From Rhodosorus marinus CCMP1338 (Eukaryota > Plantae > Rhodophyta), in NCBI GenBank assembly GCA_029953675.1, contig JAMWBK010000001.1, forward strand, positions 1,860,001-1,924,000: a DNA stretch of 64,000 bases, written 5' to 3'. The translations under genes were made by a program, and so were the position numbers. This document shows, piece by piece, positions 46,706 through 56,633 of the stretch (its first letter is position 1; each line of letters starts with the position of its first letter). The notes below the pieces were generated by a model. It was not told the DNA's origin. It ran no database searches and saw only the letters and a list, made by a program, of their open reading frames with translations.

Positions 46706-48630
46706 CTACCATTCCAGCGAAGCCAACGTGGCTTCTCCTCTGCTCTCAAACGTTGTATGGAAGAGCTTGCGGGCCTTATCTGAACCAGGCTCAGCTCCTA
46801 TTAAATCGTAAACAATTTGTACACCTTTACAGTCTTTCAGATCGTCGATCACTGACCCTTGTTTATAAACAGCTTCCACGTTCTCTAGCAAATTTCTATC
46901 ACGAACGTCACCTCCAATCTATTGTTCCCACATCGCAAGAAACAAGCGTGGGACAAGGGAAAAGACCAGTAAATCAGTTGCACGAACTCAGAGAAACGGA
47001 GGTTCGAAGGCTTGCAGTGTCGACGCTCTCTACTGCCCCTGCACTACATCCAGAACCAAGCTAGGAGAAAACAGAGTGACTGAAAATGTGTACCTGACCA
47101 CCTCCATTGTTACAACCACCAGGACAAGACATCATCTCCACATACTGGTACTGACATCTTCCAGCAGCAATGCTTCGCATGATCTTCTGTACATTCTTAA
47201 AACCATACGCTGCTGCAAATTTTATCATGTTCTCTTCTTTGGCAGGGTCTTGCAGAACATACTCCTACACATCGACAACCAACAAGTCAGGTGGCAAGTA
47301 GAGCAGTTACAAAAGACGTTCGATGGAATCACAATGATCGTTTAAAACCGCAATTCTGTTCGCATACCTTGAAATCAGATCCTCTCCCAATCGTTTTGAA
47401 CTGTAAAGACTCAGGAAGTTTGTATCCAAAGTACTTCTCTGCAACAGCCCTAACGGTGAACTCCAGGTAACCGCCAGAACCTACTAGCTCACCAAGGTAA
47501 ACGCTGCCAAGGGCGCCGTGATCACCTCCGAAATCGTCGTCCAAGCTGGTTCTTCTTACCGTGCTTAGGGGACTTTAGGAAGACACGAAACAAAAGGTTA
47601 CGATTCAACATCTTCCCTCCAGAAGGGGCGATCCGAATGCTCCGACTCCCTCATCGAGCCTCATCTGAAGACGAGAAGGAGTAACATACCTGAACGACTT
47701 GATGATGATGGAATCAAGTTCATCCGAAGTTATGACAGAATCCACTTCAGGTGTCTCGTGGTATTCCAGCTCTGGCCTTGCTGCTTCTAGTTTCTTATCG
47801 TGACAAGGCATGACCGTGGCGACCCATACCTTCCTTCCCTGTGCGACCTCAGTTGCGCTCGGGAGTAGACGCTTTGCCAAGGTCGCCAGGATAGCTTGGG
47901 GTGATTTGACCTACCGAAGAAGAAATCACCGACGAACTATAAGCAGCAATAGCTGCTTAGACCGTTCGACTGTGAAAACCTTACCTTGGAGAGTTTGCTT
48001 ATCACTTCTGGTCCTTGTTTCTTCTCGACGTATGAGACGAACCCTGGACAGGCAGATGTGATGATTGACTGCTGCTTTTCAATCTCTGTGAAAACTTCAG
48101 CTAAATGCTCCAACAAGCAAATTCTCCTTGCTAGAGACACGTCGTAGACCTGTGAAAGAAAGCCGTTGAGCTTTTGCCCGTCCTCCCGGCTCTGTGAGCT
48201 CGGAGTTGTGCTGGATTTTTACCCTTGACGCTCCAAGTTCCTTCAGGATGGTGCACAGTTTTTCGTACGTTTCGACCAGGCCAAGCCCATATTTTTCAGC
48301 CACAGAAGCAACCGCCTGCTGAGACAAACCCACGACCGCAAACCGGGACTCGTCCGAACATCCGCTCTCAAAAGCGCGGAGGGCCTCAGCGCTGTCCAAC
48401 AAAATCGTCTCCGCGGAGGTCACACATCCACTACATGTAATACAATCAGACAGAGTCACCCTAGCAATTTTGGCTTGTTCTTCAGACTGCTTTCCATACA
48501 TTGGAGAAGCGAATGACCCGGGCTTGGGCTTCGATGCCGCCTGCATCCCACCCCCGACAGGCAGGATGCAAGCATCGGAGGGTCGAAGAAAATCATTCAA
48601 ATCAGTTAACTTCACAGTTCCCTGACCCAT
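46706..48630 (-). CDS. NAR1: NAR1/CIAO3 (IOP1) FeFe-hydrogenase-like cytosolic Fe-S assembly protein
   Basis: LTDLNDFLRPSDACI, LSDCITCSGCVTSAE, ITSACPGF, VMPCHDKKLEA, EMMSCPGGCNNGG and LFHTTF...W* distributed over several exons. Confidence 0.92.
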
Positions 48631-49196
48631 AATACTATCCTTCTTCTCATTCCTATCCACAAAGACTCCTCATCTTTCTGTCAAACCCTCCACAAACGCA
48701 ATAACCATCTCCAACCCCTCCCGTCCCCCCACCCCCGAGGTCCCTCCTTCCGTTGCCCCGCCACGCTGCTAGCATTTTCCGTCAACACAAATCCGTTGAA
48801 AAATTCCATCAGCCAACCAAATCCTTTAAACAAAGTTAATCCAATGAAACAATCTAAACAATTACTTACAAAAATACGTGGCTTTTAATTGGATGTTATG
48901 TACTATTAAAGCCAATTAAAAACGGATATCATGAATTAGTCGTGAAGTACCGTAATTATTTTTATAATATGTATGATTTGAAATTGAATTCTAGGGTTCT
49001 TTAAATTATGGGTGAATGAGAGTTGAGAAATGGGAAATGGATTACTTAGCTGGTTTGGTGAGGGGTTTGGGGCTTGGGAGGGGTCTGTGGGGGATGGAGG
49101 AGGGTGACAGAAGAGAAGGTTGATGTTGTAGAGGTACTATTGATGTGAAGGATAAGGATCTGGTAGGAGAACAGTGAAATTTTGTCTGGAAAGGGT

Positions 49197-52143
49197 ATGG
49201 GTGAAGCTGATAGGAAAGATGGTGGGGAGGGGGGTGAGGTTGCATTTCAGCAGTTCCATTTGGTTCCTGACGGGAAAGCTCAGATCCGAGTTGATAAATC
49301 TGATGTGCTTGGTATAGGCGTGGTCGTCGATGTGAGGATTGACGGAGGCTCGTTTTCGGACAAGTGTAGATTGCACTGGGGTCTTGTCGGTGGCAAGGGC
49401 TCTCACTGGGAGCCGCCACCGAATGGATGGGTTACGAAACCAGATGTGTCCTACGATGCTGGGGACAACGCCTGGCAAACACCATTCGAAAATGGACTTG
49501 TTCGTGTGCACTTTGGAGACAATGTAAAGCCATTCAAAGCGTTCTCTTGCGTTGTTTGGGATACTGCTCATGACAAATGGTATAAGAGCGATAATTATGG
49601 GAACATGAAGGTGGAGCTGGAAGGATTACAAGTACTTTGGGACACTCCAAACGTTGAGAATGGAGCAGTGGCCAAGAAAATCGAAGAAAACGGTTCTGTA
49701 CCTGTGCCGAATGAGAACAATAAGTTGAAAGCCAACGGTTCACATAAGACTCCTCAAGAGAAACGGGCCTTGGACGCCGAGCGCATATGGACTAGTTTGG
49801 CGGTAGATGCAGGGTCAACCGAGCCGATAATTAGAGAGGGCGAGCAGAAAGTTGTTGCAGACCAAAACGCGATTTCGTGGATTGCAAACTGCGAGCACAA
49901 AGCCGAGAGGTCGCTCATGCATCGCTACGATCTCGTCCGGGAATTTGTCCAACATTTTGGCGCAAGCACATCCGCGCTGACTACCCTGGCAGTTTGGATG
50001 CAGCTCAGCACGATGAGGTTCCTTGTTTGGAACCGCAACTACAACGTCAAACCCCGAGAAATCTCGCGATCTCACGACAAGGCTTCTTCGGCCCTCGCCG
50101 AGCTGCTGGGCCCGGATGAAGCCAGTAGTTCATGGGAGCCCCTGCGCATGGCTCTTTCCAAAGTCGGTCGAGGAGGATCGTCTGATATGGGACAGAGCAT
50201 ACGTGAGGAGATTTTAATCATCCAGCGAAATAATCACTGTAAGGTAAGTGATCTCCGCCTTCCTTCCCTTGAACGAAGCAGCCCATTGCGACAGACTCAT
50301 GACGAGGACGCGCTACCATATCTTTGGTAGGGAGGATTGATGGAAGAATGGCATCAGAAACTACACAACAATACATCCCCTGACGACGTGGTCATATGTG
50401 AAGCACTAATTGCATTCATTGAAGCTAAGGATGACAAGCTGCAGGTCTACTGGAAGCACCTCAACGACAATGGTATCGACCGTGATAGACTCAAGTCGTT
50501 CGATAGAGCGATATGGTCCGAGCCAGATCCCGACCTATCCAAACAGCCAAACCTCAAGGGGGATCTGCAGAAGTTTCTTGTGATATTGAGAGCGGTTCAT
50601 GATGGCCTCGACCTTAAAACGGCTTCTGAAAAGGTATGCAGCAGAAGCGATCCTCTTTGGTTGATCTATAACCACAATGTCTAACCTCAGAGACGCCGCG
50701 GTTGCACAATGGGACTACATAGGTCGTTGGATACCGTCAAGATAGTAGAAAATCACATGTAACATACGCTGCGGTGCCTGGTATCGACATAGGGTTGTTC
50801 AACAACTTGCTGAAGGTTTTCTGGTACCATCCGGATGTTCTCGTGAAGTTGGAGGCGATTCTGGAGCTACGAAGAATCGTCTCTGTTGCTATTAAGGGTG
50901 TTCCGTCGGAGAGACGATTGGATCTTATCTTCTTAGACTTTGCGCTTGAGCAGGTGAGCTTGCTTGGTTTTTCATTGTTGACGACAGCATACAGAGCACT
51001 AACGAAAAACAAAACGCCTGTGGCATTCGGTTTTCTGTGGCACAGACTTTGAAGACGCAGGTTGAAGGTCAACTGAAGTCCCTTAGGGATGCTGAGATGC
51101 ACGACAAGGCGATGTGCGTTCTAGCAAAGACCCTGGAGAATGCTGCACGCTCGTCAGGTCATAATCGCGACCTCCTGTACGCTTTATCGATGTTAAAGTC
51201 CTGCCTCACAGCTGAGTCCAAGGAAAAATCGGAGTACAATCTGAAGACTCTTGCTGCCGCGGACCGAATCAAGGTCTCGCTCCTTGACCATACTCAAAGG
51301 TATCGGACTGCATCACCTAAGCTGGTTGCCAACTTCTGGCATCATCGAGGAAGAGGAGTGGGCCACCTTCTTGCATTGGAGGCAAACGCACCTCGAGCAA
51401 CAGGGCATTCTCTAGAGACGCATTGCTCATGAGACCGAACCCTCGTTTGAGACTGGTTTCAGGAAATGAATGCGTGTGACGGTTCTAACCGGGCACGATT
51501 AGGTCTTGGACTCACACCTTGTCCCTTTCATATGATCCCCGTTTTAGGATCGTTGACCGATTCCAGGATACTGCCGTGAAACTATGCGACAGGATGGGAA
51601 TGAAGAAGAATGTAGCTGAGCAGGTGACTGAAGAGATTACCAGGAGCTCATGCCTGGCAAGCGTGTCACTTGTACTGGGCTGTGTGATGCCAGTCCTTCG
51701 ACAAGCTGCGGGACGTGGTTGCTGGGAAATCCTCTCATCGTTTGGCGCAGAGGTAGCTACATTCGCGATTCGTTTTTGCGCTGATAGAGAGCTTCTATTG
51801 AATTTAACTACTTTTCTTTGCGCGCTTCCAACAGGGCAAAATCCAGTTGGAGGAAAGCCTGGTTCCTCTTCAAGGTCACGTCTTTGCAGAGCCGGTTGTC
51901 ATAGTTGTGGACAAGCTTTCGGGTTTCGAAGACATACCTCAAGGATGTGCTGGAGTAGTCATAAGAGCAGGGGGCGATCAACCGGATTTGCTCTCTCACA
52001 TTGCCGTTCGAGCCCGAAACGAGCATGTGCTGCTTGCTGCTTGTCATGATGAAAAGGTCTCGAACGAGCTCCGGGACAGCAAGTATGCCAACTTGAGTCC
52101 GCATGCGGGCTCGGAGGACGTTAAGGTGAAGCTCAGCGGCTAA
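49197..52143 (+). CDS. GWD: Alpha-glucan, water dikinase-like protein lacking the C-terminal nucleotide-binding domain (about 782 aa)
   Basis: join(49197..50243,50331..50633,50723..50953,51046..51299,51548..51752,51835..52143). CBM45-like LHWG/WEPP/WQTPF region, AERSLMHR, NYNVKPREIS, WHQKLHNNTSPDDVVICEAL, and phospho-His motif PDLLSHIAVRARN. TAA at 52141-52143. Confidence 0.88.
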
Positions 52144-52659
52144 GAATGAGTTAGCAAAGCCGCGCCCTCGACCCTGTTATCATTTTATTTGTAAGTGTAG
52201 GATTAGCGTGGGGTATATCAGGACACTCAAAGCAAACGGGAGTCCAGTGCTAGTTTGTCGGTTTCATTCGTAAAGCCATGCCGCTTTTTTTTGGGAAAAG
52301 GTCCCTGGTCCTCCTCTTCATTTGGTTTATTTTCTCGTTTTTAGCAGTACAAGCACTTTAACCACGCTATACCCTTTGACTGGGCTGCCAACGCGAGGTT
52401 CTCCTTTCTTGGGCGAGCTGGCAAAAGTCCAATGGCCTGCAGAGCCACGTGCTTGGATATTACTTGGGGCGCATGAAAGGGCTCTTGTTCACCAGGTGAG
52501 CTATGATCCAGGCATGTCTATGAACAACGAATAGCCCAAGTTGAGCCATTCCAAGATGCCTACCAAATCAACACGAGATGTTAGACTTGAACAAGAAGGC
52601 AAATTTAAAAGCTGGATGAGTCAATCCAGGTGTGGTTTGCGAGCCGCGAGCCGTGCTTT

Positions 52660-55407
52660 CTAATTTTTTTTCAACAAGAGGCTCCTGAAGTCGTCCTGAG
52701 TCATGTTCGCCTTCCCTGGCCCCTCCATAGAAGCTTCCCCGCCATCCTGTTCTCCCTTCTTCTGCTCTGTTGACTTGCGTTCCACGGCTGCTGGAACCAA
52801 GCCCCTTCCAGAAATCTACGAGTTTATCGAACACATATGGAAGATAAGCGGTCTGTGAGTATTGAGTATTCCTACAACCAGTTCACACCCCTCTGACTTT
52901 TTATGCACGGGCCCAAGGGAGTAGAGCCCTTGACAGGTCCCAGCAGCTTTGCGTGGACAACTTCTGTGCCTCGCACGTACCTCTATGGATCTGCGGGGCC
53001 GGTCTAAGCGTTTAGTTAAATGCCTCTGAGCGGCCTCACCCTTTGGAGGTTGATGCTGAGATTGATCTGATCGTCCCGAACCACTCTCCTTACGGCCCTT
53101 CAGCCCAGACCCTCTACCGCGCCGGCCACTCGCAGCTGCTGCCGCTGGGTTGGACCTCTTAACTATTATTGGCCTTCCCTCTACTATTTTTCTGTTCAAC
53201 TTGAGCGCCTCAACGACTCCTTCATCAGATAAGAATTCTACGTAGCCATACCCTCGTGAAGCATGGTCCGACTGCCTTGTGATAACCCTGCATGAACGCA
53301 AGGAACAAAAGGTCAGGTCAACCCGTACACGAAGAAGACCTGGTTCCATTGCATGGGTTTCTTCGATTTTGTTACTAACCTCGCTTCTTTGAGACCCACG
53401 ATCTGTGCAAACGCCTCGGCGAGTCCATCTTTCGTCAGATTGAAGGATAGGTTGCTGACGAACACTGTGTTCTCCTCTGGACCATTGTCTTCCATGTCGT
53501 CATCCTTTTCAGAAGTCTTTGCCTTCGTTTTCCCCTTCGATTCCCCTTTCGCTCCCTTCGGTTGTCCTTCAGGAGCTTTTCCTTGTATGTCCATGCTAAT
53601 TTCATGTCTCGATCCACTCTGTGTCTCCTCGCGAAACGCTATATTCGGTTCGCGCCTGGGCGCAGCATCGTTATGCCTCATTCGCTTCGTCTTCCGCTGT
53701 TCCTTTTCCTCCCGCGCCCTCTTCCTTTCCTCCAAAGTCTGAGTCTGCTTGGAGATGATGGACCTCGCATACTCATAGCTTTCGAGTGACCCGGATAAGC
53801 TTTCAATTTCAAGCCATGCAGATCCTAGGACGCTAATCTCGGCTGTGCTCTGAACGACGTACGAACCACGCTTGAGAGCCGTTGTTGCTGCCTTATAATC
53901 TCCGATTTTGTGCAAAGTTTGAGCGTACTCCACCCACCAGTACGCTTCCTTTCCACGCTTTTGCAAGAGCTTTTCAAAGATCGCTTTACATTGCTCTTCC
54001 AGCTTCAGTTCTGCACCAATCTTGCCGGTGAAGAGGCTGACTGTGCACCATCCAGGAGACCCATCCTCCTCAGATTCCAGTGCTATCTTCTGTGCATCTA
54101 GAATCGCCTCCGCGCGGACTTCAGAACTTGCCTCGGATTCCGTCCGGTCAATGTACCTCTTTGCGAACTGGAGGTAGCACAAGCTCAGCTCCGTAGTTGA
54201 GAGTCTATGAAGCTGACAATGCAGAAGTGCTTCTCGAAAGGCGTTGATCATTTCATCCTTGTCAGCAGATAATGCCTCCAGAGCGCGAAGATACTGACAC
54301 CAGAGTTCCTCGCTCCAAGGGCAGTTGCGAACAGCACGTCGCAGAGTCGTCACGCGAAGCTTCTTATCGTGAAGACGTTCAAATACGAACTGTGCGTATT
54401 CAATCCAACATTCAGCAAGAAGAAAGCAACAGCTTATCGATCTCTCGTAGGCTAGTCGAACCCTCGAGAGGCCTTGAATCTCGTGCTTCTTCTCATATTC
54501 GATGAGCGTCTTCCAAGCACTCCAAAGTTCAGGGGTCGAAACGCCGGACCCACCAGCAGCAAGTTTCTCGTTTTCAATTATTCTATTCTCAATATTGAGC
54601 AGCTTAGTGTTGTGATACTTTACATTCTTGTTCCAGTTTTCAGCAGCGGTCTTCAGTTCATCGCCTCCGTCTTTCGCCTTCGATGCTTCTTCTTCTACTC
54701 CTGAGGCATGGTAAACCCATCCATAAGAAGCGATTCGATTAGGTAAACCCACAATCAGAGTACAAAGGAAAAACAAGGAAACATGGTGCTTGCTTGTTCT
54801 TGTTCCTACCCTGCAGCGGTACAGAAAGCAGCCTCTTGAGAAGCGCACTTGTACGATCGTTTGTTGTCGTTCCACTTTCTTTCAATTCAGCCTCGAAGGT
54901 TATAAATGCTTGCCAGATCCTAATTCCGTTTCTGAAAACTGACCCACACTCTCCTAAAGCGTCCTCATACATCTGCCTCAATGTCTGCTCTGGTAGTGAG
55001 CCCTCCAAGAAAGCCTCATGAGCGATGTTCAAGCTCTTCAACGCCAGATCAACTGACAGATAATCAGACTTGCCGCGATCTAGTACTTGTAAAGATGCTT
55101 TCCAATCACCAATCTTGAGAAGATCGTCTGCCCATTCCATCCAAAGCTCGGGCGGGATAGGGAACTTTCTGGCCATGTTCTCCCTCGCTTCATTCAGCTT
55201 ATCAAACTCTCCAGACTTGCGAAGAACTCTCAAGAGTTCTAGATGAGTCTCGTAGTTCCATTCTCCCTCTGGACTTGCTAGCAATCCACTGAGGCGCTTA
55301 ATGTTCTCCTGAACCAGCTCCTCGTCGTCAGAAGAATCTCCATCGTCATCGCCAGAGCTGTTCATTTCCTTGTCCTCTGATTCCATTGGATCTTCTGTAA
55401 TAGTCAT
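52660..55407 (-). CDS. SART3: SART3/Prp24-like U4/U6 recycling factor (HAT repeats, RRMs, Lsm-interaction motif)
   Basis: HAT repeats (AVRNCPWSEELW). RRM RNP2 NTVFVSNL and RNP1 RGYGYVEF. The last exon ends in the Lsm-binding MTQDDFRSLLLKKN* at 52660. Confidence 0.85.
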
Positions 55408-56633
55408 GTTCCTGTTATTCTCTCCTGTATCTCAAAACGCCTTACCAATTTCATGTCCCCTTCGTTCTTGTCCGTTTACCCAACACAGATATGCAGTTTT
55501 AAAGCATCAAACAGATCGCAGAGATTTCAGAAAAGCACATAACTGTCACTGTAGCCAACACCAGCATGTACCAAATTATATAATTTTAAAATAAATAGAT
55601 TTAAAATTAGCTCGGGCATCTCAGACCAACATATTGATCTGTTCTATTTAAATAGCTTTGATTAGATTGTACCTGATTAAAACTAGGTTATTCGTCACTA
55701 AGAACTGGTGGGGGATAGGCGGCGTTGCTCTTAGGGAGAGAATGTATCCTCCTTTCTTATGCCTTGGGATAAAATTTGGAAGATGTTCTCGCTCTGTTTC
55801 TTCGAGGCGAGCAGTTCCTGTCTGTAAGAATCACGTGCACTTCACCTCCCTTGGTCAGCACTGATGTGGCGGAGTGTTTCGTAGAGGAAAAGCCTTACAG
55901 GGCGTAGCGGATATCGACTAAGCCGCAGTTGCAATCTACGACCTGAATTGTTACGGGGGGATGTTCCCTGATTCACCGAACGTAAGTACCCCGAGATGAT
56001 ACATCGTCAGTTGTCAAGTCCGTCTTATGCCATCAACCTGTTCTCCACAACGAACCCTCTTCTTTGTCAGGATCCAAGGTGGGAATGACGGCCCGCTGAC
56101 CAGGTCTTGGAGCCTACATTCCACTCTTGTGTACAGTTCGCTAAGAATCCCCCCATTCGAAGTCCACGAGCCTGACCTGATTAGCTATTCTTCAGCTCTA
56201 AGAGGTAGTGAGCCTGTGAACGATGAGGTTCTTGAGACCGCCGAAGGTGGTTCCTAATGTACAGAGTTCTCGGGACGATTTCTTCTGTTCAGGAAAAGCT
56301 TATTATGAATGTGTCTATCGTATAGCATTCTAGATTCTCCGTATTGTGGGAGTGTTTTGGTCACCTTGCCCATTGGCTGCCGGGTGCTCTGGAGAGCGCA
56401 AACGGCGCTCGGGATGATGCCGAGAATGTGCGAAGACGGGTGGCCTTCGCATTCCAGTCGATCCCAGTTGCTGCCTGTGCGCGAGTAACAATTATTGAAA
56501 TTATTACAATACCTCCCGCAATCTATGTGTCCAGTTCCATTTCCCAAGGCAGATGTCTCTCAGACAATAGCGTACATGCTCACGCTTCCAACATAAAAAT
56601 TGACAATTTATCTAGGCTGCGAATCAAAGGAAC

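Follow-up and report, generated by a model that had tools for sequence, protein, structure and literature searches.

Starch breakdown is controlled by reversible glucan phosphorylation, and the dikinases GWD and PWD are viewed as self-contained enzymes of five domains. For alpha-glucan water dikinase (GWD), the five-domain architecture is regarded as the standard (PMC13553574), and the canonical GWDs of red algae have the ATP-binding domain (PMC8703398). In pyruvate, phosphate dikinase (PPDK), phosphoenolpyruvate (PEP) synthase, and rifampin phosphotransferase, a mobile phosphohistidine domain shuttles between two sites (PMC13553574). In an engineered version of the potato enzyme StGWD1, deltaCBM45_2-deltaATP, AlphaFold2 put the phosphohistidine domain against the central domain, in a "transfer" conformation (PMC13553574). 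No paper on a natural GWD without the ATP-binding domain was found in the literature.

Here we describe such a protein from the red alga Rhodosorus marinus CCMP1338. Its gene lies at positions 1909197 to 1912143 of contig JAMWBK010000001.1 (assembly GCA_029953675.1), within a 64-kb stretch of that contig that was analyzed as a whole and is referred to below as the window; all further positions are those of the window unless another contig is named. An earlier note, made from the letters of this DNA, had proposed a GWD that is cut short after its phosphohistidine domain. The locus is a real, expressed, and selectively maintained GWD paralog without an ATP-binding domain, and the protein probably has a role in starch phosphate metabolism that has not been described before.

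A GWD-like protein that ends with the phosphohistidine domain

The gene model of the earlier note, six exons encoding about 782 amino acids (aa), held in full. The exons, between 49197 and 52143 on the forward strand, join through introns that all have GT..AG borders (5/5) into a coding sequence of 2349 nt, and the 782-aa translation is identical over its full length (100%) to GenBank entry KAJ8908747.1 (hypothetical protein NDN08_005452, R. marinus). The reading of the domains as a CBM45-like module, the conserved central region, and an intact catalytic-histidine motif was likewise confirmed by profile and structure-database matches (Table 1).

The CBM45-type domain is all-beta in an AlphaFold2 model of the protein, and Trp61, Trp71, and Trp78 within it are invariant in an alignment of five red algal sequences. 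The central domain (aa 225 to 666) matched the crystallized central domain of StGWD1 in a phmmer search of the PDB (9HA9_A, E value of 8.8e-88; 9QVI_A, E value of ~1e-87); the StGWD1 reference for this all-helical domain was aa 483 to 926. PF22973, the GWD phosphohistidine domain, was matched by aa 670 to 779 (E value of 6.8e-26) over profile positions 1 to 107 of 115. The catalytic residue, His735, is located in PDLLSHIAVRARN (aa 729 to 741), and 47 residues remain after it, the number that had been estimated in the note.

The mean predicted local distance difference test score of the AlphaFold2 model was 75, with values of 84 to 95 across the central and phosphohistidine domains and mostly of 85 to 95 in the former. 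The phosphohistidine domain is modeled with 7 strands and 3 helices, which matches what was reported for the same domain of StGWD1 (PMC13553574), and the chain ends directly after the final strand (aa 776 to 781). With a complete fold and a chain that ends just past its last strand, the truncation is a clean cut at a domain boundary. A Foldseek comparison of the model with the PDB gave no significant match, which is uninformative, as the GWD central-domain entries are recovered by sequence alone.

Among the features that define an autonomous GWD (EC 2.7.9.4), the CBM45, the central domain, and the phosphohistidine domain with its LSHxxVRARN motif are present, and the C-terminal ATP-binding domain (PPDK_N, PF01326) is absent. 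Because one defining feature is missing, the protein was not classed as an autonomous GWD. Nor does it belong to PWD/GWD3 (EC 2.7.9.5), as neither CBM20 nor PF01326 was reported at an E value of ≤1 in the Pfam scan of the 782-aa protein; its UniRef label is "CBM20 domain-containing" despite the absence of CBM20 from that scan. It falls instead within an informal group of domain-less GWD-like proteins, in which the open reading frame (ORF) stops with the final strand of the phosphohistidine domain, the catalytic residues are retained, and a residue other than Phe occupies the position equivalent to approximately F898 of StGWD1 (see below).

No sign of an ATP-binding domain in the window

PF01326 was absent from the protein in the Pfam scan, as was any match to a purpose-built hidden Markov model of the ATP-binding domain. 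When the ATP-binding domains of three full-length GWDs were compared with the whole window by tblastn, the best E value was only 0.67, and no likeness to this domain was found across the 49 kb upstream and the 12 kb downstream of the gene within the window. The stop codon of the convergent SART3-like gene (52660) is separated from that of the GWD-like gene by 516 nt, where the note had counted about 515 nt and had also seen no ATP-binding domain.

A 5374-nt MMETSP transcript contig (L001) from a second, fairly divergent Rhodosorus strain was colinear with the window and agreed with it in all five splice junctions, in the length of 782 codons, and in the position of the stop. Past exon 6, this contig shows no splicing; it reads through the stop and all of the intergenic DNA until it enters the SART3-like gene. 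Over this intergenic DNA the two strains share 79.6% identity, and their alignment has 39 gap columns; at a synonymous divergence (dS) of 0.26, this is about the neutral level. The two-strain comparison revealed no conserved ORF there.

The earlier note had allowed for transcripts that splice to a downstream ATP-binding exon and for a misassembled locus. The transcript contig is colinear across the stop and the intergenic region, and the same structure is present in this independent transcriptome of another strain. Because the tblastn search was negative, the gap is only 516 nt, and the contig from an independent strain is colinear and unspliced, there is neither a downstream exon nor a misassembly, and a downstream or hidden ATP-binding exon was rejected.

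An expressed gene under purifying selection

The ratio of nonsynonymous to synonymous substitution rates (dN/dS) was calculated by the Nei-Gojobori method between the window strain and the second strain. The value for the whole gene was 0.19 (dS of 0.26), compared to 0.195 (dS of 0.32) for the SART3-like neighbor. Within the gene, dN/dS was 0.06 in the CBM45-like domain, 0.135 in the central domain, 0.22 in the phosphohistidine domain, and 0.64 in the linker. The GWD-like gene is thus expressed and under ordinary purifying selection, at the level of a housekeeping neighbor. An ORF that is intact in two strains, the existence of transcripts, and a dN/dS of 0.19 do not fit a pseudogene. The note had argued against simple decay, a view that the second strain supports, and the unexpressed, neutrally evolving gene that it had considered as an alternative was not what was found.

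Several intron-retaining isoforms were also seen in the MMETSP assemblies (P0002, P0121, and P0123 to P0125). One of these, P0002 (668 aa), reads into retained intron 4 (51300 to 51547) and terminates there.

The same architecture in other red and green algae

To survey homologs, HMMER was run exhaustively against 1.84 billion cluster representatives, and the names of matches were then looked up. Further GWD homologs without the domain were found that end 44 to 65 residues past the catalytic His, at the homologous last strand. Two are from red algae, Porphyridium aerugineum (842 aa) and Timspurckia (802 aa), and others (1140 to 1340 aa) are from six members of the Chlamydomonadales: Chlamydomonas reinhardtii, C. 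incerta, C. schloesseri, C. eustigma, Volvox africanus, and Gonium pectorale. An MMETSP transcript encodes a domain-less protein of 1032 aa that is followed by a 720-nt 3' untranslated region (UTR). Up to 10 kb from the GWD-like gene, neither C. eustigma nor C. incerta encodes an ATP-binding domain. The database labels of these proteins are "hypothetical" or name a domain only ("phosphohistidine-like domain-containing"). The earlier note had proposed looking for the truncation in related red algae and had missed its recurrence, which extends to other red algae and to the Chlamydomonadales; judging from these homologs, the architecture is not peculiar to the Rhodosorus locus.

Other candidates were rejected as true truncations. 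In Pyropia vietnamensis, P0237 is followed after 200 nt by a complete ATP-binding ORF of the same strand, whose open frame overlaps it. The genes on BAAFKR010000002.1 (L127:10001-14609) are annotated as MMPV_001133 (1033 aa, ending past the phosphohistidine domain) and MMPV_001132 (360 aa, PF01326 only), and the frame of MMPV_001132 is already open across the stop of MMPV_001133. From this arrangement the two are almost certainly one gene split by annotation, and the cause appears to be either a small intron that the annotation missed or a frameshift from the assembly of GC-rich sequence, not a true split. Downstream of P0139, a bacterial gene, lie frameshifted fragments of an ATP-binding domain, P0137 is a partial bacterial ORF from a cluster with 1170-aa members, and P0130 and P0242 are fragments in which the diagnostic Phe is retained. 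P0128/P0295, considered as a possible Rhodosorus paralog, derived from another sample.

The closest relative of the N-terminal half of the Rhodosorus protein was P0219 (386 aa), which is 37% identical over aa 14 to 349 and visibly more similar in the CBM45 stretch. The homology breaks off precisely at the boundary of exon 1 and intron 1 of the Rhodosorus gene. P0219 is probably an ortholog from a related red alga in which the position of the intron is conserved.

On the bacterial ENA contig ctg95884l (L128:13873-17094), a GWD-like gene with a frameshifted ATP-binding domain is adjoined by a 1073-aa ORF with a xylose-isomerase-like TIM barrel (PF01261, AP_endonuc_2), a GWD-type phosphohistidine domain, and PPDK_N. 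Such a protein would be a dikinase that acts through another substrate domain.

Independent losses suggested by a distance tree

A neighbor-joining tree was built from 485 well-aligned columns with 200 bootstraps; as the product of a distance method only, it is provisional, and its deeper nodes are weak (33 to 58%). The domain-less group of the Chlamydomonadales (91%) was sister to the full-length protein of Monoraphidium (91%), Porphyridium and Timspurckia (100%) were sister to that of Vitrella (96%), and Rhodosorus adjoined a full-length protein encoded on a eukaryotic metagenome contig that is compact and poor in introns (89%). Because each of the three groups stands beside a different full-length protein, the tree suggests that the ATP-binding domain was lost at least three times independently, at the same boundary. 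A single ancient domain-less family was not supported by this tree, provisional as it is, with sister pairs at 89 to 96%. Long-branch attraction would be expected to group the truncated proteins together, which is the opposite of what was seen. The recurrence of the architecture speaks for a genuine function that can be reused, not for an isolated curiosity.

Catalytic residues are kept and one conserved Phe is lost

Residues of StGWD1 highlighted as functional were taken from PMC13553574. The equivalents of E900, R904, W931, S991, H992, R996, R998, and N999 are kept in all of the truncated-looking sequences (13/13), that of R923 in 12 of the 13 (it is replaced in Porphyridium), and that of E901 in 10. 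Conservation among 76 full-length homologs reaches at least 88% in 65 columns, and 55 of these are retained in all three domain-less lineages.

Only one of the 65 columns is altered in all three lineages. It corresponds to a Phe two residues before the E-E-x-x-R helix (approximately F898 of StGWD1), which is present in 97% of the homologs that have an ATP-binding domain (291/300). In its place, the window strain has Val and the second Rhodosorus strain has Leu; the Porphyridiophyceae have Ile, and the green algae have Ile, Val, Leu, or Tyr. All of the false truncations have Phe at this position. Among the aligned sequences, the residue at this site thus changes together with the presence or absence of the ATP-binding domain, and it may contact that domain or tune the docking of the phosphohistidine domain. 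The association marks this residue as a candidate link between the two halves of the enzyme. E971 of StGWD1 was also considered, as a marker for the loss of autophosphorylation, and was rejected, as the position is too variable among full-length proteins.

Possible functions of a dikinase without its ATP-binding domain

Because the ATP-binding domain is absent, the protein cannot charge its own histidine from ATP. Three apparently independent domain-less lineages have kept the catalytic His, the Ser, Arg, Arg, and Asn on the same helix, and, in the central domain, the Glu and Arg that face it; we therefore think that the half-reaction from phosphohistidine to glucan is still in use. We tentatively favor a phosphohistidine half-enzyme that is charged in trans, a reading that is plausible but short of probable. 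Bound to starch, such a half-enzyme would receive phosphate on His735 from an outside donor, most likely the ATP-binding domain of a paralog (canonical GWD or PWD) within a hetero-oligomer, and His735 would then hand the phosphate on to glucan. A stand-alone nucleotide-binding protein would be a less likely donor, because a separate domain seems less likely to rebuild the canonical geometry once the Phe has been lost.

A canonical GWD of Rhodosorus or a stand-alone ATP-binding protein was also sought beyond the locus. A degenerate motif scan of metagenome and transcriptome contigs yielded at least 120 loci, with none from the Rhodosorus sample among those listed, which is not evidence of absence. 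Land plant GWDs dominated the matches to a profile from five red algal sequences that end after the phosphohistidine domain, among them Pyropia P0237, afterwards recognized as a split annotation; this likewise says nothing for the absence of a partner in Rhodosorus. The ATP-binding domain of Pyropia gave 75 mostly fragmentary matches with none labeled Rhodosorus, again not evidence of absence.

Several points weigh against charging in trans. No phosphoryl donor was found in the search of the 64-kb window. We know of no demonstrated trans-phosphorylation for GWD. All domain-less lineages have lost the near-invariant Phe, and even the two Rhodosorus strains have different residues in its place (Val and Leu), which suggests that no ATP-binding domain docks canonically on this central domain; a stand-alone partner whose only effect would be to restore the canonical enzyme is disfavored for that reason. 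The conserved active-site residues could equally be explained by the binding of phosphate esters without catalysis. Furthermore, StGWD1 was reported to be a monomer in which the phosphohistidine domain pivots within a single polypeptide (PMC13553574).

Nearly as likely as a half-enzyme charged in trans is a noncatalytic protein that binds starch or phosphoglucan. It is possible, if again tentative, that the protein is a regulatory pseudo-dikinase that binds starch through its CBM45 and whose phosphate-handling site only recognizes glucan or phosphoglucan, in which case it might modulate the access of canonical dikinases, phosphatases, or amylases or serve as a scaffold. No autophosphorylation is possible without the ATP-binding domain, and the loss in all lineages of the Phe linked to that domain fits constraints that vanished along with it. 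Independent losses would be easy if no new partner had to evolve, and several paralogs in starch metabolism that have lost domains or activity act as regulators (LSF1, BAM4, BAM9, and SS5). However, pseudoenzymes usually drop the catalytic residue in some lineages at least, whereas the nucleophilic His with its whole motif and the facing Glu and Arg are invariant in all the domain-less sequences of three lineages, and dN/dS in the phosphohistidine domain is 0.22.

An ATP-independent phosphotransferase or phosphatase, in which the second half-reaction runs in reverse, appears unlikely. His735 would take phosphate from a glucan phosphate ester and pass it to water or to another position on glucan, so that starch phosphate would be removed or relocated. 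Such an enzyme would account for a fully kept site of transfer from phosphohistidine to glucan next to an absent ATP site, and, as no partner is required, it fits a repeated independent origin. However, the formation of phosphohistidine from a phosphate ester is energetically uphill. In addition, glucan phosphatases of the laforin/SEX4 type are already present in red algae (PMC2064834, PMC8703398).

That the missing domain is an artifact or a sign of decay (an ATP-binding exon missed by annotation or lost by misassembly, or a pseudogene) is highly improbable: some other apparent truncations are just that (P. vietnamensis P0237 and bacterial P0139), but at the Rhodosorus locus no likeness to the domain lies in the 49 kb upstream or 12 kb downstream, the convergent gene closes the locus after 516 nt, the transcript contig of the second strain continues unspliced through the stop and the 3' region, length and stop are the same in two strains at a dS of 0.26 and a dN/dS of 0.19, and the diagnostic Phe that false truncations retain has been lost.

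Taken across lineages, there is close to an even chance that domain-less GWDs are a class of phosphohistidine proteins that bind starch, have evolved repeatedly by convergence, and work with no ATP site of their own, either as obligate partners charged in trans by canonical dikinases or as ATP-independent enzymes that relocate or remove glucan phosphate. If so, an unrecognized component would be added to the starch phosphorylation cycle of red and green algae. A selected, recurrent form with an intact His would mean that the two half-reactions can be separated between proteins or that the half comprising glucan and phosphohistidine sites has a function of its own.

Gene model and surrounding genes

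The GWD-like gene is flanked by a Nar1/Fe-hydrogenase-like gene and by the convergent SART3/Prp24-like gene. The upstream neighbors (47000 to 48660 on the minus strand, and beyond) are a Nar1/NARF-like gene of the Fe-hydrogenase family (PF02906) and a D123-family gene. These are unrelated to starch metabolism, and the locus is therefore not a starch metabolism gene cluster.

Positions 2439 to 3103 of L001, corresponding to 52144 to 52817 of the window, join the GWD-like gene and the convergent SART3-like gene in one 5.4-kb contig. Thus, either the 3' UTRs of the two genes overlap or transcription reads through. A TGTAA motif is located 47 nt beyond the stop of the GWD-like gene, and the poly(A) site would be expected close to it.

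Table 1. Features of the GWD-like gene and of the adjoining region (window coordinates)
Feature	Position	Strand	Description	Support
Exon 1	49197..50243	+	aa 1-349: start codon, CBM45-like domain, low-constraint linker, start of central domain	Same splice site in transcript contig L001
CBM45-type Ig-like starch-binding domain	49251..49616	+	aa 19-140	PF23166, E value of 1.7e-9
GWD central (glucan phosphotransfer) domain	49869..51710	+	aa 225-666, exons 1-5	
Exon 2	50331..50633	+	aa 350-450	Splice model and L001
Exon 3	50723..50953	+	aa 451-527	Splice model and L001
Exon 4	51046..51299	+	aa 528-612, last codon split	Splice model and L001
Exon 5	51548..51752	+	To aa 680	Splice model and L001
Codon 638 (Val)	51624..51626	+	Approximately F898 of StGWD1	Phe in 291/300 homologs with ATP-binding domain
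E-E-I-T-R, codons 640-644	51630..51644	+	E900, E901, and R904 of StGWD1; helix facing catalytic His	Conserved
Phosphohistidine domain, complete	51720..52140	+	aa 670-782, crosses intron 5	
Exon 6	51835..52143	+	aa 681-782 and stop TAA (52141-52143)	Same stop in second strain
Catalytic His735 codon (CAC)	51997..51999	+	Inside PDLLSHIAVRARN	
Inter-stop region	52144..52659	.	516 nt; 3' UTRs; TGTAA at 52190	No ATP-binding-domain coding potential
SART3/Prp24-like gene (HAT repeats and RRM)	52660..55444	-	Convergent, bounds the feature; 5' coordinate approximate	

Comparison with known dikinases

The Rhodosorus protein resembles canonical GWD1/SEX1 (EC 2.7.9.4), as known from potato StGWD1 and from red algae such as Cyanidioschyzon merolae, in having a CBM45-type N terminus, a central domain, and a phosphohistidine domain. 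Its central domain is 38 to 40% identical to that of plant GWD1, and the LSHxxVRARN motif and the facing E/E/R helix are common to both. In contrast to canonical GWD, it is without the C-terminal ATP-binding domain of ∼320 aa (PF01326), and it has one CBM45 rather than two. The CxxxC redox pair of canonical GWD is also absent, with Leu at the position of C1003 and only C1007 kept, and the near-invariant Phe beside the E/E/R helix is replaced by Val.

The proteins of the Chlamydomonadales (C. reinhardtii CHLRE_08g363874v5, Gonium KXZ47751.1, and those of Volvox and C. eustigma) and of the Porphyridiophyceae are similar in that they end 44 to 65 residues past the His, keep the catalytic residues, and have the conserved Phe replaced. 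However, none of them is the nearest relative of the Rhodosorus protein in the neighbor-joining tree, and the green algal proteins have long N-terminal extensions, for a total of 1030 to 1340 aa. The catalytic logic is that of the swivelling-domain dikinases PPDK, PEP synthase, and rifampin phosphotransferase, in which both sites are on one polypeptide, whereas one site is missing from the Rhodosorus protein.

A counterpart in composition is engineered StGWD1 deltaCBM45_2-deltaATP, which has the same combination of central and phosphohistidine domains (PMC13553574). That construct was made in the laboratory for small-angle X-ray scattering, whereas the Rhodosorus protein is natural, under selection, and has retained its CBM45. 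The Rhodosorus protein is also a natural "transfer-state" construct that could serve structural work.

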